A stretch of DNA of 64,000 bases from Macrostomum lignano (taxonomy: Eukaryota), in assembly GCA_002269645.1 (NCBI GenBank), contig NIVC01002829.1, forward strand, positions 1-64,000, in the 5' to 3' direction. This document shows, piece by piece, positions 7,114 to 15,850 of this stretch. A program made the position numbers and the translations under genes. Position 1 is the stretch's first letter. Each line of letters starts with the position of its first letter. Under the pieces are notes generated by a model. That model saw nothing but the letters and a program-made list of their open reading frames with translations. It was not told the origin of the DNA and did not search any database.

Positions 7114-7601
7114 AGAATCACTAAATTGTCAAGGCTTCAGGGAAAAGAGATTGCTGAGATTTCAAGGCTTTAGGTTGGGTTAAAGTTAGGTTTAGGTCAG
7201 GTTTGGGTTGAGGGTTAGATTTTACAGGGGATTCTACGGGTTTTACGGGTTTCAAGGTTAACAGGGTATTTTTCAGGTATCAAGGTTTATGGGGGGCATC
7301 GCTGACATGTCAAGGCTTACGGGGGGAATAGCTGAGATGTCAAGGCTCACGGGGGAATAAATGAGATGTCAAGGCTAAAATCAGAAGCTACATGTAGTTT
7401 ATTGAAAACTTTTTTCATTATTTGTTGGCTCCTCACGGGAGGGATCGCTGATAGAAAAAGCGTAATGTAAAAAATAAAAGAAGCTTCATGTCGAAGTTAA
7501 GAGATTCATTTGGATGTCGAGGCTTGCGGGTAATTGCTATCGCTATTCTCTCCAAGAGTGCTATAATGACTCTTAGAGAGAATTACTGAAATGTCAATGT
7601 C

Positions 7602-8150
7602 TTAGGGTTAGGTTAGGTTAGGGTTAGGGTTAGGGTTAGGGCTAGGGTTAGAAAGTTGACAGATTTTTTTAGCTTTTATGGCTTATGGAGAGCATCGCTG
7701 AGATGTCAAGGGGGAAGTTGATATGTTAAAGCTTGTAGGGGGGGGGAATTACTGACATGTCAAGGCTTCCAAGGGACTGCTTTCAAAGCAGTATATTATT
7801 GCAAAGAGATATTGCAAAGAGATGCTACATGTAGCTTATTACAAAACTTGTACATGCATTTTTTGGCTCCCCAACGCTAAGATACTAAGCTAAAAAAATA
7901 CTACTAGCACTTCACAAACTTATGCAGATGTCAGGCTGTAGGGTTAGTGTTAGCGTTGGTGTTAGGGTATAGGGTTAGGGTTAGGGTTATAGCGTTAAGA
8001 TTCGGGTTAGTGCTAGGGTTAGGGTAGCTTATAACTTAGCTCATGTAGCTTATTAAAATGTTTATCATAGAAGCGTCATCATGCAGCATCATGCAAAAAC
8101 TCATGAACAAAATATTAAATTTAGGGTTATGTTTAGGGTTAGGGTTAGGG
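7602..8150 (+). repeat. Interstitial TTAGGG telomere-type tracts (7602-7651, ~7940-8025, 8121-8150)
   Basis: Runs of GGGTTAGGGTTAGGG with variants. Confidence 0.8.
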
Positions 8151-9106: not shown

Positions 9107-12100
9107 ATGAGTGCCGAAAAAGCCAAGGCAGACAGGCGGCGCCAGGCTAGAGTTCAGGGCGCCTGGAACAGCGGCCCAGCCAGGCGCAGTGGCGGTGGCG
9201 TCAAGCAGACAAACAAAGTCGATGGCGGAGATGCCAGCAGTGCGCAGCAGAAACCGCAGGTGCCAGCAGCCAATCAGGAGTTTGTTTTTGATGGCAGCGT
9301 CAGCGAAGTGCTAGCTAGGGAAGCTGAGCTGGCTTCCAAGCCTGTGACCGTTGATAAGGATGGAGATTACGAGCTGAGCATTGGCAGAAACGATGTCAAA
9401 GCTGTTGTGCAGATGAGGCAAAAGTTTCTATCTGACGCTGAGAACCGGCGCCTGCTAGCTGAGCTAAATCGTTTGCCCTGGCAGCAGCGAATGGGCCTGG
9501 ATCAGGGCGGTCAGCCGTATCAGGAGCCGCGGGAGACCTGCTGGTTCGGGCGGCCCTACACATACAGCCACGTTAAATGGGAGGCTACGGATGACTCCTG
9601 GCCACAGGTGATGCTCTCGCGATTCAACTGGACTGGTTTTCTTTTAGGCTAAAATTAATTTTGGACATTTTAAAGCAATAAAAACTAACCACCTTTGCCC
9701 CAGATTCAAACAAGATTTTTTATAAGAACAGGGCTTCAACTCTTACTGAGAAACATCACTAAAGAATGAACCCTAAATTTCCAATAAGAATTAGTTCTAC
9801 CACAAAAAAGGACTCTAAGGATTTAACTGTCTTTGAGACCCGACTCTGAACTGTCCTTGAGACTCGACTCTAAACTGTCCTTGAGACTCGACTCTAAACT
9901 GTCCTTGAGACTCGACTCTGAACTGTCCTTGCGACTCGACTCTGAACTGTCCTTGAGACTCGACTCTAAACTGTCCTTGAGACTTGACTCTAAACTGTCC
10001 TTGAGACTCGACTCTAAACTGTCCTTGAGACTCGACTCTGAACTGTCCTTGCGACTCGACTCTGAACTGTCCTTGAGACTCGACTCTGAACTGTCCTTGC
10101 GACTCGACTCTGAACTGTCCTTGAGACTCGACTCTGAACTGTCCTTGCGACTCGACTCTGAACTGTCCATGAGACTTGACTCTAAACTGTCCTTGAGACT
10201 CGACTCTGAACTGTCCATGAGACTTGACTCTAAACTGTCCTTGAGACTCGACTCTGAACTGTCCTTGAGACTTGACTCTGAACTGTCCTTGCGACTCGAC
10301 TCTGAACTGTCCTTGAGACTCGACTCTAAACTGTCCTTGAGACTTGACTCTAAACTGTCCTTGAGACTCGACTCTAAACTGTCCTTGAGACTCGACTCTG
10401 AACTGTCCTTGCGACTCGACTCTGAACTGTCCTTGAGACTCGACTCTGAACTGTCCTTGCGACTCGACTCTGAACTGTCCTTGAGACTCGACTCTGAACT
10501 GTCCTTGCGACTCGACTCTGAACTGTCCTTGAGACTCGACTCTGAACTGTCCTTGCGACTCGACTCTGAACTGTCCATGAGACTCGACTCTGAACTGTCC
10601 TTGAGACTCGACTCTGAACTGTCCATGAGACTTGACTCTAAACTGTCCTTGAGACTCGACTCTGAACTGTCCTTGAGACTTGACTCTGAACTGTCCTTGC
10701 GACTCGACTCTGAACTGTCCTTGAGACTCGACTCTAAACTGTCCTTGAGACTTGACTCTAAACTGTCCTTGAGACTCGACTCTAAACTGTCCTTGAGACT
10801 CGACTCTGAACTGTCCTTGCGACTCGACTCTGAACTGTCCTTGAGACTCGACTCTGAACTGTCCTTGCGACTCGACTCTGAACTGTCCTTGAGACTCGAC
10901 TCTGAACTGTCCTTGCGACTCGACTCTGAACTGTCCATGAGACTCGACTCTGAACTGTCCATGAGACTTGACTCTAAACTGTCCTTGAGACTCGACTCTG
11001 AACTGTCCATGAGACTTGACTCTAAACTGTCCTTGAGACTCGACTCTGAACTGTCCTTGAGACTTGACTCTGAACTGTCCTTGAGACTCGACTCTGAACT
11101 GTCCTTGAGACTCGACTCTAAACTGTCCTTGAGACTCGACTCTGAACTGTCCTTGAGACTCGACTCTGAACTGTCCATGAGACTTGACTCTGAACTGTCC
11201 TTGAGACTCGACTCTGAACTGTCCATGAGACTTGACTCTAAACTGTCCTTGAGACTCGACTCTGAACTGTCCTTGAGACTCGACTCTGAACTGTCCATGA
11301 GACTTGACTCTGAACTGTCCTTGAGACTCGACTCTGAACTGTCCTTGAGACTTGACTCTAAACTGTACTCTACTCTGAACTGTCCTTGAGACTCAACTCT
11401 AAACTGTCCTTGAGACTCGACTCTGAACTGTCCTTGAGACTCGACTCTGAACTGTCCTTGAGACTCGACTCTGAACTGTCCTTGAGACTCAACTCTAAAC
11501 TGTCCTTGAGACTCGACTCTAAACTGTCCTTGAGACTTGACTCTGAACTGTCCTTGCGACTCGACTCTGAACTGTCCTTGAGACTCGACTCTGAACTGTC
11601 CTTGCGACTCGACTCTGAACTGTCCATGAGACTCGACTCTGAACTGTCCATGAGACTTGACTCTAAACTGTCCTTGAGACTCGACTCTGAACTGTCCATG
11701 AGACTTGACTCTAAACTGTCCTTGAGACTCGACTCTGAACTGTCCTTGAGACTTGACTCTGAACTGTCCTTGAGACTCGACTCTGAACTGTCCTTGAGAC
11801 TCGACTCTAAACTGTCCTTGAGACTCGACTCTGAACTGTCCTTGAGACTCGACTCTGAACTGTCCATGAGACTTGACTCTGAACTGTCCTTGAGACTCGA
11901 CTCTGAACTGTCCATGAGACTTGACTCTAAACTGTCCTTGAGACTCGACTCTGAACTGTCCTTGAGACTCGACTCTGAACTGTCCATGAGACTTGACTCT
12001 GAACTGTCCTTGAGACTCGACTCTGAACTGTCCTTGAGACTTGACTCTAAACTGTACTCTACTCTGAACTGTCCTTGAGACTCAACTCTAAACTGTCCTT

Positions 12101-15052
12101 GAGACTCGACTCTGAACTGTCCTTGAGACTCGACTCTGAACTGTCCTTGAGACTCGACTCTGAACTGTCCTTGAGACTCAACTCTAAACTGTCCTTGAGA
12201 CTCGACTCTAAACTGTCCTTGAGACTTGACTCTGAACTGTCCTTGAGACTCGACTCTGAACTGTCCTTGAGACTTGACTCTAAACTGTCCTTGAGACTCG
12301 ACTCTAAACTGTCCTTGAGACTCGACTCTGAATTGTCCATGTGACTTGACTCTAAACTGTCCTTGCGACTCGACTCTAAACTGTCCTTGAGAATGGAATA
12401 AACTGGTTGAATATGAAGTATAAAGTGCCATTAGCAACGGTTTCAGAGTTGTCCTTCAGAATGGAATCTTAACTAGAGTCTAACGATATGACTAAGCTCC
12501 AAATCGCTCCAAATGAGTTTCCTCATCAGTTCCTCAATCCACAAATCCACAGGTGCTACTTGAGCTGAAAAACCGGCTGGCCGACGAACTCGGCGTCGAG
12601 TTCAACTCGGTGATGTGCAACCGGTACCGGGACGGAAAAGACAAAATCGGCTGGCACGCGGACGACGAGCCGAGCCTCGGCCGACACCCGGTCATCGCCT
12701 CGCTGTCGTTCGGCGAGACCCGTCGCTTCATGCTTCGGCGCCGGGACTGCCGAGTTCAAACGCTTCGCCCGCTGATTGGCGATCCGATCACCGTGCCGCT
12801 ACAGTCCGGCGACCTGCTGGTCATGCGCGGCTCCCTGCAGGAGGACTGGCTGCACTCTGTGCCGCCCGAGTACCATGACAAAGAGTCTAGGATTAACCTC
12901 ACGTTTAGGGTCATCGAGCACAGTCCCAACGAGCAGCTGTGTCTGAGGCCTGGGCCTGAGGACAATGAAAATAAGCAGGTTACTCTGTCTGCTCGGCCTG
13001 GACAGATGCAGGCCCAGCTCTGCTGCTACAGGTAATCTGAATCCCATTGTCCGCAAGATCCCTATCCCGAATTTCACAATCCACATCCCGAATCCCTCGA
13101 TACCTATCTCGAATCCCACGATCCCTATCAGAAATCCCACGATCCCCATCTCGAATTCCACGATCCCCATCCCAAATCCCTCGATCCCTATCCCGAATCC
13201 CTCGATCCCTATCCTGAATCCCTCGATCCCTATCCTGAATCTCTCGATCCCTATCCCGAATCCCACAATCCACATTCCGAATCCAATGATCCACATCCCG
13301 AATCATTTAACTCTCATCCCATAATCCGCATTTTCAGGTCCCTTATCGTGTCCAACTCTGGCCTCGTGGCCGAGGCGTCCGCCGCCCTCGACCGCCTGTC
13401 GTGGCGCAGCGCCGGCTCCTGCGATGTCGCCCAGCTCGACCTCGCCGCCTCCCAGCCGCAGGAGCTGTCGCCGCTCGCCCGTCTCGCCGTAGCCCTGGCC
13501 ACACTGACTGGCAACGCCCGATTAAAAGTCGGTGCCTACGCTCGGTTGGCCGCGGTTCGCCTCGATCACGGCTCCAAGCACCTGCCCTGGCGCGAGGCCA
13601 ACTTCGGTGATGGCGGCCCCTGCCAGACTGCGGAGACCTTCGTGGCTGGTAAGGTTTAGTCTTTATCTGTGTGACACGTTTCTGGTGTTACTACAACTGT
13701 CCCCGACAATTATTGAGGCATGTTACCGACGTCTGGCACGCGTCCCTGGCAATGATTTCGACATGTTTCTGATGTCCTAAATGTCCCCTGACAATGAGGC
13801 ATGTTCCCAATGTCTCACAAATGTCCCCTGACAATGAGGCATGTTCCCAATGTCTCACAAATGTCCCCTGACAATGCTTGTGGCATGTTCCCAATGTCTC
13901 ACAAATGTGCCCTGACAATGAGGCATGTTCCCAATGTCTCACAAATGTCCCCTGACAATGCTTGTGGCATGTTCCCAATGTCTCACAAATGTCCCCTGAC
14001 AATGCTTGTGGCATGTTCCCAATGTCTCACAAATGTGCCCTGACAATGAGGCATGTTCCCAATGTCTCAAAAATGTCCCCTGACAATGAGGCATGTTCCC
14101 AATGTCTCACAAATGTGCCCTGACAATGAGGCATGTTCCCAATGTCTCACAAATGTCCCCTGACAATGAGGCATGTTCCCAATGTCTCACAAATGTCCCC
14201 TGACAATGAGGCATGTTCCCAATGTCTCACAAATGTCCCCTGACAATGAGGCATGTTCCCAATGTCTCACAAATGTCCCCTGACAATGAGGCATGTTCCC
14301 AATGTCACACAAATGTCCCCTGACAATGCTTGTGGCATGTTCCCAATGTCTCACAAATGTCCCCTGACAATGAGGCATGTTCCCAATGTCTCACAAATGT
14401 CCCCTGACAATGAGGCATGTTCCCAATGTCTCACAAATGTCCCCTGACAATGAGGCATGTTCCCAATGTCTCACAAATGTCCCCTGACAATGAGGCATGT
14501 TCCCAATGTCTCACAAATGTCCCCTGACAATGCTTGTGGCATGTTCCCAATGTCTCACAAATGTGCCCTGACAATGAGGCATGTTCCCAATGTCTCACAA
14601 ATGTCCCCTGACAATGCTTGTGGCATGTTCTCAATGTCTGACGGGTGGTATGTATGCGACATGTTCCTGGTTTTTTTAAGATGCATTCAAATCTGCATAG
14701 TCAAAGATTTGCTTTATATTCATTTCTGGCTACTCGCTAGTAGCATTCTGTGATGCGTGTCGCCTTTTCGCCGTCTCCCGCAGTGCTGGCCCTTGGCGAC
14801 GCGAAGGCTTTGGCGCAGCGGCCACTGGAGATCGAGAAGCGGCTGAACAGCCCAGCCCAGGGCAACCTGAAGTCCGGCCAGATTTTCCTTCGGCCCGGCG
14901 ACGCGGTCACCCTGCTGCACGGCTTCGGCGCTGACTGGCGCTACCAGCTGGGCCGGGCTGGCCGCGCCGAGCCGCACGAGCCGGCGGTGTTTCTGTTCCT
15001 GACGCCGGACCAGCGGGACATCGGCTGCGTGCTGGCTGGGCTGGTCATCTGA
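9107..15052 (+). CDS. ALKBH3: Alpha-ketoglutarate-dependent dioxygenase ALKBH3-like, 4 exons (9107-9607, 12553-13031, 13338-13648, 14784-15052), 519 aa, with a C-terminal second degenerate AlkB-like domain
   Basis: Exons 1+2 join in phase 0 (CAG|GTGATG ... CACAG|GTG) to give WPQVLLELKNRL..FNSVMCNRYRDGKDKIGWHADDEPSLGRHPVIASLSFG..GDLLVMRG..WLHSVP..RINLTFR. This is the ALKBH3-type 2OG-Fe(II) core (HxD...H, RxxxxxR). Exons 3 and 4 join in phase 2 and phase 1; total 1560 nt, divisible by 3. Exons 3-4 are less certain than exons 1-2. Confidence 0.88.
9826..12390. repeat. 24-bp minisatellite CTGTCCTTGAGACTCGACTCTRAA filling ALKBH3 intron 1
   Basis: About 100 highly similar tandem units; source of the DSSESSLK/LSLRLDSE ORFs. 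Confidence 0.97.
13040..13320. repeat. 21-bp minisatellite (CCCGAATCCCTCGATCCCTAT) in ALKBH3 intron 2
   Basis: Tandem degenerate copies. Confidence 0.9.
13780..14630. repeat. 40/44-bp minisatellite (GTCCCCTGACAATGAGGCATGTTCCCAATGTCTCACAAAT) in ALKBH3 intron 3
   Basis: Tandem copies with a recurring 4-bp longer variant. Confidence 0.95.
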
Positions 15053-15299: not shown

Positions 15300-15850
15300 C
15301 CATGGTAGAAATCCCACTGGGAATATAATCCCTATAATGGAAATCCCACTGGAAATCAAATCCCTATAATTAAAGTCCCACTGGGAATAGAATCCCTATA
15401 ATGATAATCCCATTGGGAATAAAATCCCTATAATGAAAATCCCATTGGGAATAAAATCCCTATAATGAAAATCCCATTGGGAATAGAATCCCTATAATGA
15501 AAATCCCATTGGGAATAAAATCCCTATAATGATAATCCCATTGGGAATAAAATCCCTATGATCCCATAATGATAATCCCACTGGAAATAGAATCACTAGA
15601 ATGAAAATCCCACTGGAAATAGAATTCCCTATAATGGAAATCCCACTGGGAATAAAATCCCTATAATGGAAATCCCACTGGGAATAAGATCCCTATAATG
15701 ATAATCCCACTGGGAATAGAATTCCCTATAATGATAATCCCATTGGGAATAGAATTCTCTATAATGAAAATCCCACTGGGAATAGAATTCTCTATAATGA
15801 AAATCCCATTGGGAATAGAATTCCCTATAATGAAAATCCCACTGGGGAAA
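15300..15850. repeat. 30-bp minisatellite (ATCCCAYTGGGAATARAATCCCTATAATGA) downstream of ALKBH3
   Basis: Tandem copies. Confidence 0.9.

Follow-up and report, generated by a model that had tools for sequence, protein, structure and literature searches.

The window analysed here comprises 64,000 nucleotides of contig NIVC01002829.1 of Macrostomum lignano (positions 1 to 64,000, forward strand; locus L002) and contains an ALKBH3 gene, BOX15_Mlig033276g5, with a 519-aa product. This single gene probably encodes an active-type ALKBH3 domain (domain 1) joined to a ligand-less, AlkB-derived second module (domain 2, within residues ~290-519), which likely arose by an old internal duplication and is expected to be non-catalytic. 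An initial annotation of the locus had described a tandem of an enzyme and a pseudo-enzyme with a complete second AlkB domain; it was made without knowledge of a sister paralog that is ligand-less in both domains. That annotation is partly supported: its coordinates are accurate and its core reading, a tandem of AlkB origin, is right, whereas the completeness of the second domain was overstated and the function proposed for it is speculative.

Domain structure and ligand positions

ALKBH3 oxidatively strips single-stranded DNA and RNA of 1-methyladenine and 3-methylcytosine, and an active member of the AlkB family requires the ligands HxD...H and RxxxxxR. In domain 1 the Pfam family PF13532 (2OG-FeII_Oxy_2) was found at residues 104-286 with 116.9 bits against a cut-off of 31.2 (E 1.7e-33). 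Sequences of human ALKBH3 structures match domain 1 end to end (E 9e-54; ALKBH2, E 1.5e-20), which places it clearly nearer to ALKBH3 than to ALKBH2, and the top database matches of the full product are vertebrate ALKBH3 proteins with 40% identity. The ALKBH3-specific N-terminal motif RRQARVQGAW is present in the region of domain 1. Furthermore, the ligands H202, D204, and H268 are aligned to WHSDD and WQHRV of human ALKBH3, and the 2-oxoglutarate-binding residues N190-R-Y192 and R280/R286 are aligned to that protein as well. Residues ~80-289 constitute a complete, presumably active Fe(II)/2-oxoglutarate dioxygenase of the ALKBH3 type.

The positions relevant to both domains are as follows (DSBH, double-stranded beta-helix; HMM, hidden Markov model):

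12655..12663, + strand: Fe(II) ligands H202-x-D204 of domain 1 (CAC GCG GAC), aligned to human WHSDD
12853..12855, + strand: distal Fe(II) ligand H268 of domain 1 (in DWLHSV), aligned to human ALKBH3
12889..12909, + strand: 2-oxoglutarate motif R280-INLTF-R286 of domain 1, aligned to human ALKBH3
13456..15007, + strand: core of domain 2 (residues 367-505), split by intron 3, alignable to the DSBH core of AlkB from the helix preceding strand I up to the strand RxNLTFR
13591..13599, + strand: putative HxD equivalent R410-E411-A412 of domain 2, with the preceding Trp kept (register from hhalign and HMM)
14942..14944, + strand: putative distal-His equivalent Y484 of domain 2 (in DWRYQL; same register)
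14984..15004, + strand: putative RxNLTFR equivalent A498-VFLFL-T504 of domain 2, both Arg absent (same register)

The AlkB-type derivation of the C-terminal extension, as proposed initially, is borne out by transitive homology through a paralog. An exhaustive phmmer search with domain 2 among 1.84 billion cluster representatives recovered the protein itself and one genuine relative, P0043 (E 7e-9 within domain 2); three further matches were rejected as repeat or composition matches. P0043 is the 582-aa product of M. lignano gene BOX15_Mlig023741g2 (PAA74205.1/PAA82540.1), annotated as 'hypothetical protein'. The GenBank version of the window protein (P0049) and P0043 are collinear over 457 aa, with both domains covered (E 3e-44, 31% identity). 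As the two domains are aligned collinearly, the two-domain architecture is, on the evidence of this alignment, older than the split between the window gene and its paralog Mlig023741. The P0043 gene (L001, NIVC01000971.1, 10001-14501) consists of exons 10001-10368, 11470-11778, 12856-13432, and 14007-14501, the third of which codes for residues 226-418 and thereby for the second half of domain 1, the linker, and the first half of domain 2. Due to the location of this junction within a single exon, the fusion of the domains in P0043 is independent of splicing.

Of the two domain 2 sequences, that of P0043 is the more conservative. For comparison with the enzyme family, a canonical ALKBH HMM was built from 15 ALKBH3/ALKBH2 sequences, the two-domain proteins of M. 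lignano being excluded. In a single pre-specified comparison, domain 2 of P0043 scored 13.9 bits against this model (E 1.6e-6), a value reached by none of 2000 shuffles of the same domain (maximum 5.6 bits), and the alignment spans the region from the IASLSFG strand to RxNLTFR. BLASTP of domain 1 of the window protein against domain 2 of P0043 gave 159 collinear residues with 23% identity (E 0.005). When the two domain 2 sequences were combined into a profile, hhalign aligned 119-122 columns with ALKBH profiles at scores of 32.2-34.2 (P 1.6e-4 to 3.5e-4). Among the controls, 300 column shuffles yielded a mean of 13.3 (standard deviation 2.5, maximum 25.2) and 150 block shuffles a mean of 16.0 (standard deviation 1.7, maximum 21.6), so that the domain 2 profile outscored all 450 shuffles; a reversed version of it reached 16.5. 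The highest score was obtained with the domain 1 set of M. lignano itself, followed by vertebrate ALKBH3 and by plant ALKBH2 in third place, an order that weakly suggests an internal duplication of the ALKBH3 domain. The C-terminal ~140 residues of domain 2 most likely descend from an AlkB-type DSBH by such an old duplication, as far as the sequences can tell.

This significantly AlkB-like region comprises a helix equivalent to LLELKNRLADELG followed by all DSBH strands. Within it, five of five Fe(II)/2-oxoglutarate ligands are replaced (by R, A, Y, A, and T), which would make domain 2 a pseudo-enzyme. Because all five ligands are replaced, it is predicted to be incapable of oxidation catalysis. 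The loss of the HxD...H and RxxxxxR ligands noted in the initial annotation is thus found at the aligned positions R410/A412, Y484, and A498/T504, and the codon coordinates given there for both domains (HxD at 12655-12663, R-E-A at 13591-13599, His at 12853, Tyr at 14942) are correct. In case of P0043, the putative domain 2 equivalents are Q-P-S for HxD and F for the distal His, and both Arg of RxxxxxR are possibly kept. The motifs common to both domain 2 sequences (ARLA, NAR, HLPW, F.AV.A.G, RPLE, and GD..L.HGF..DW) look structural and do not form an alternative metal site. The view that domain 2 is old and maintained is sustained as well, since the domain is common to paralogs that are 31% identical and its genomic copies differ synonymously only.

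The gene Mlig023741 resembles the window gene in its two-domain layout and in a domain 2 that also lacks the His and Asp ligands. It differs in its domain 1, from which HxD and the distal His are missing and for which Pfam gives no match, and in its intron positions. Conservation of intron positions between the paralogs in domain 2 was considered and rejected: the introns are located ~8 codons apart and are unlike in phase. The C-terminal tail of Mlig023741 is Cys-rich (CPHLCKCCARC...CPLC) and could form a small zinc-binding motif. A second copy of this gene (P0046; L004 3001-7335) is separated from P0043 by 6 synonymous and 3 non-synonymous sites.

Gene structure and coding status of the extension

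The coding sequence of 1560 nt is distributed over four exons and ends with the stop codon TGA at 15050-15052 (slashes mark splice junctions):

9107..9607, + strand: exon 1, residues 1-167, with the RRQARVQGAW motif and the first half of the catalytic AlkB domain; exon identical in L002 and in the second genomic copy (L003); phase-0 donor CAG/gtgatg
9608..12552, + strand: intron 1, 2945 nt, occupied by a 24-bp minisatellite (9825-12392, ~107 copies); 1062 nt in the second genomic copy
12553..13031, + strand: exon 2, residues 168-326 plus 2 nt, with the catalytic core of domain 1, the canonical ALKBH3 end RINLTFRVIE (residues 280-289), and the first ~37 residues of the extension
13032..13337, + strand: intron 2, 306 nt, phase 2, with a 21-bp minisatellite and an in-frame TAA at 13033-13035
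13338..13648, + strand: exon 3, residues 327-430, with a part lacking detectable similarity up to about residue 366, followed by the beginning of the AlkB-like core (helix LARLAVALATLTG, HLPWREA)
13649..14783, + strand: intron 3, 1135 nt, phase 1, with a 40-bp minisatellite (13779-14616)
14784..15052, + strand: exon 4, residues 430-519 plus TGA, with the remaining predicted DSBH-like strands of domain 2

All three introns are of the GT..AG type with good consensus and phases 0, 2, and 1; the junctions read CAG/gtaatc to ttttcag/G for intron 2 and CTG/gtaagg to ctcccgcag/T for intron 3. The continuation of the frame from exon 2 over introns 13032-13337 and 13649-14783, as read initially, is therefore consistent in phase and provided with good splice sites. 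The spliced product is 100% identical to UniProt A0A1I8FX44 (P0001) of M. lignano, and it agrees throughout, including the last eight residues, with GenBank PAA54966.1/PAA85907.1 (P0049), a 5'-partial record of 526 aa named 'hypothetical protein BOX15_Mlig033276g5, partial'.

The GenBank annotation of this assembly is a genome-guided transcript assembly from RNA-seq data (StringTie, TACO, TBONE) and not an ab initio prediction, and its pipeline explicitly splits polycistronic precursors where spliced-leader and poly(A) sites lie (PMC5730564). The older, independent annotation underlying P0001 has identical exon junctions. In the coding frame, exons 3-4 are free of stops and show GC contents of 0.74, 0.51, and 0.85 at the three codon positions (GC1/GC2/GC3), which is characteristic of GC-rich coding sequence; in the remaining forward frames, stops occur. 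None of the 193 codons of exons 3-4 encodes Met, for which reason these exons cannot represent an independent downstream cistron. The splice sites are shared by the second genomic copy (L003, NIVC01000301.1); its introns measure 1062, 746, and 723 nt compared to 2945, 306, and 1135 nt in the window, and its coding sequence differs at 7 sites, all of them synonymous (7/7) and three of them in exon 4, i.e. in domain 2. Taken with the RNA-seq-based model and the paralog junction within one exon, these findings support the assignment of the C-terminal extension (~215-230 aa) to the ALKBH3 protein and show it to be coding.

The in-frame TAA at 13033-13035, previously pointed out inside the donor of intron 2, is indeed present, and read-through into the intron leads to a protein ending in ...CCYR*. 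If intron 2 were retained, a single-domain protein of the conventional kind would possibly result. An AATAAA is not visible in this intron. An alternative C-terminus in UniProt model P0002 (A0A1I8FGL7) was considered as a product of alternative splicing and rejected: its tail matches exon 2 in antisense orientation and is probably an artefact of inverted duplication, mis-assembly, or prediction. P0002 is an older-assembly model of a third copy, and it lacks the first 16 aa encoded by exon 2.

Each intron and the 3' flank harbours a distinct minisatellite, namely 24 bp x107 (9825-12392), 21 bp x12 (13057-13304), 40 bp x20 (13779-14616), and 32 bp x16 (15309-15846). The lengths of these arrays are strongly unequal between the genomic copies, the exons of which are only 7 synonymous sites apart. 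Approximately 1 kb upstream of the gene (~7590-8150), degenerate telomere-like repeats of the TTAGGG type occur interstitially within an AT-rich region (27-38% GC up to ~10 kb). The next downstream gene on the same strand (window ~17337 onward; L002 14252-17967) encodes a Flightless-I-like protein of 1308 aa with leucine-rich and gelsolin repeats, which is also found downstream of the second copy in L003. A second copy of exons 3-4 was not found elsewhere in the window.

Interpretation and competing explanations

Several observations weigh against an AlkB-derived second domain translated with ALKBH3. From the window alone, the likeness of domain 2 to AlkB is not beyond chance. Pfam detected no family within the last 230 aa of the window protein. 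A BLASTP comparison of its two domains gave a best E of 0.22, the best local alignment being the one drawn in the initial annotation. With the single domain 2 sequence, hhalign against the ALKBH alignment resulted in P 0.12, and the canonical ALKBH HMM scored -1.8 bits, a value matched by 160 of 2000 shuffles (P ~0.08). Searches of PDB sequences with domain 2, both as a single sequence and as a profile, returned chance matches only. In Pfam searches with domain 2 of the window protein and of P0043, no AlkB family was found, the sole match being a meaningless one to Phage-tail_3 (E 0.12). The AlkB origin of domain 2 moreover rests on one bridging paralog, the transcript support for the fusion is indirect in that it runs through the annotation pipeline, and constraint on domain 2 is judged from very few substitutions, because no homolog was found outside M. 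lignano. A word-indexed protein search with domain 2 (single sequence and two-sequence alignment) returned nothing and is uninformative, as it missed P0001 and P0043 although both are in the collection; domain 2 leans towards low complexity and is Ala/Leu-rich, and negative results of word-indexed searches are untrustworthy for such a sequence.

The N-terminal part of the extension belongs on the same side of the balance. Its first ~60 aa (residues 307-366) reached an hhalign score of 6.0 with the N-terminal half of AlkB compared to a shuffle mean of 8.7, and the AlkB N-terminal sub-domain, i.e. the nucleotide-recognition lid and the first helices, was not detectable in the extension by hhalign. 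Hence, in the self-alignment of domains 1 and 2 proposed initially, the N-terminal blocks (YELSIGRNDVK.. with VTLSARPGQ.., ELNRLPW with ALDRLSW) score below random and are unsupported, whereas the four to five C-terminal blocks from LARLAVALATLTG to AVFLFLT stand, though only by way of P0043. Likewise, the completeness of the second AlkB domain is not supported, since only the half containing the DSBH core is detectably similar.

AlphaFold2 was run on two-sequence alignments only, with either the window domain 2 or the P0043 domain 2 placed first; a hybrid alignment of domain 2 with true AlkB sequences was avoided as circular. Both models are of low confidence (predicted local distance difference test, pLDDT, ~40; predicted template modelling score, pTM, 0.41-0.44), and Foldseek searches of the PDB with them gave nothing significant (best E 0.07 and 0.18), which again counts against the AlkB assignment. 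In these models of pLDDT ~40, the predicted order of elements (strand, helix, strand, helix, six to seven strands) corresponds one-to-one to the hhalign register, and the sequence of strands is compatible with that of AlkB. Among the non-significant Foldseek matches, Fe(II)/2-oxoglutarate oxygenases (P4H, PHD2, ALKBH6, TlxIJ, AsqJ, PiuC, and GA2ox) are over-represented, which is compatible with an AlkB-like fold without being a confirmation of it. The profile and structure check suggested for domain 2 has thus supplied the profile link through P0043 but not the fold.

Considering these points, the extension might be a real part of the protein and nevertheless a lineage-specific domain unrelated to AlkB, its likeness being due to chance or to a generic beta-rich pattern. 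The missing Pfam, PDB-sequence, and significant Foldseek matches, the chance-level scores of the window domain 2 alone, an hhalign probability of only 37-51% for domain 2 against ALKBH, and the absence of similarity in the N-terminal 60 aa would all fit this explanation. It is difficult to reconcile with the HMM score of P0043 domain 2 (E 1.6e-6, 0/2000 shuffles) and with a profile-profile score above all 450 shuffles and the reversed control. The match is also collinear and in register with the W before HxD, IASLSFG, G.LL.M.G..Q.DW.H.P, and xLxFR, and the best score is the one against the domain 1 set of the same species; we therefore regard an unrelated domain as improbable. Still less probable is that exons 3-4 are not translated with ALKBH3, the mRNA ending at or after the TAA at 13033-13035 and the exons being a 3' untranslated region, a trans-spliced downstream gene, or an annotation chimera. 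This stop codon lies immediately inside the intron 2 donor, polycistronic, trans-spliced units are numerous in M. lignano (PMC5730564), and P0002 diverges after the same donor. However, exons 3-4 combine the lack of Met with strong codon periodicity (GC3 0.85), both introns have consensus splice sites and matching phases in both genomic copies, and the fusion is given by two independent annotations, one of them from a pipeline that splits polycistrons. In addition, the paralog holds the junction of domains 1 and 2 within one exon, the tail of P0002 is an antisense exon 2 artefact, and intron 2 shows no visible AATAAA.

Domain 2 could finally be catalytic or cofactor-binding by means of non-canonical ligands, so that the protein would be a double enzyme. 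A His is kept in the conserved LLHGF motif and another one in HLPW, and at such divergence the alignment register could be off by a few residues. Against this, 0/5 canonical positions are kept in the window protein, both Arg that hold 2-oxoglutarate are absent from it, and the replacements in the paralog are different ones (Q, S, F), hence there is no conserved alternative site. A double enzyme is the least credible of these explanations, with next to no chance of being correct.

An active-type ALKBH3 domain followed by a non-catalytic, AlkB-derived module is accordingly the reading that we prefer. Domain 1 would carry out the ALKBH3 chemistry, and domain 2 might form a non-catalytic beta-helix that packs on domain 1 or enlarges the surface for binding of substrates or partners, as in Tpa1/Ofd1/OGFOD1. 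It may have been kept because it supports the structure, binds substrates or partners, or has a regulatory role. Due to the survival of a paralog with two dead domains, a catalysis-independent use of the scaffold is suggested. One may speculate further that macrostomids possess a small tandem AlkB/pseudo-AlkB family whose dead beta-helix, independently of catalysis, reads alkylated or methylated nucleic acid, or else regulates the protein intramolecularly. The window gene would be its active-plus-dead member, and Mlig023741, with two dead domains and a Cys-rich tail, would be a pure reader or adaptor. This proposal is unlikely to be correct; if true, the AlkB family would thereby have its first pseudo-enzyme branch.

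Distribution and comparison with known systems

In other organisms, the ALKBH3 homologs that were recovered consist of a single domain and measure ~285-345 aa. The searched collections (1.84 billion representatives) yielded no relative of domain 2 outside M. lignano, nor did a two-domain ALKBH3 turn up in any other organism. The literature searches, which covered tandem and pseudo-AlkB domains, flatworm ALKBH3, and both gene identifiers, returned nothing relevant. The earlier statement that characterised ALKBH3 proteins are single-domain agrees with this, no two-domain ALKBH3 having been found in other organisms or in the literature. To our knowledge and in our searches, no member of the AlkB family has been described with a second, ligand-less domain derived from AlkB. 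A third ALKBH3-like paralog of M. lignano, P0032 (488 aa), is ligand-complete and lacks the second domain; it carries an N-terminal extension of ~280 aa that is rich in Ser, Arg, Lys, and Pro.

AlkB-family dioxygenases are intensively studied DNA/RNA demethylases. If the tandem is real, it would provide, together with the doubly dead paralog, a natural experiment on the AlkB fold without catalysis, with damaged-base binding, docking, and self-regulation as conceivable uses, in an organism that is amenable to transgenesis and RNA interference. The scope is narrow, since the tandem is known from one species so far and the gene model is already public, the second domain alone having been unrecognised.

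Human ALKBH3 (ABH3/PCA-1; PDB 2IUW, 8JNR, 9NCZ) resembles domain 1 in RARVQGAW, N-x-Y, HxD, the distal His, and RxxxxxR. Unlike known ALKBH3, the flatworm protein has ~230 extra C-terminal residues that hold a second, degenerate AlkB-like core. The closest counterpart in architecture is given by Tpa1/Ofd1/OGFOD1, which are ribosomal prolyl hydroxylases conserved from yeast to human. Both domains of Tpa1 adopt the DSBH fold, Fe and 2-oxoglutarate being bound by the N-terminal domain alone (PMC2847220). In Tpa1/Ofd1/OGFOD1, a catalytic DSBH thus precedes one that has no ligands, and the flatworm protein would have this layout as well if domain 2 folds as predicted from sequence. For a non-catalytic partner domain within the same chain, they offer the best functional analogy. 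The analogy is an architectural one, as the catalytic domain of Tpa1/Ofd1/OGFOD1 is prolyl-4-hydroxylase-like, whereas domain 1 of the flatworm protein is of the AlkB/ALKBH3 type. These proteins have no sequence relationship to the flatworm extension and are of independent origin. Provided that the tandem is real, the flatworm gene would represent an independent re-invention of the design in which a catalytic DSBH is combined with a dead one, known from Tpa1/OGFOD1.

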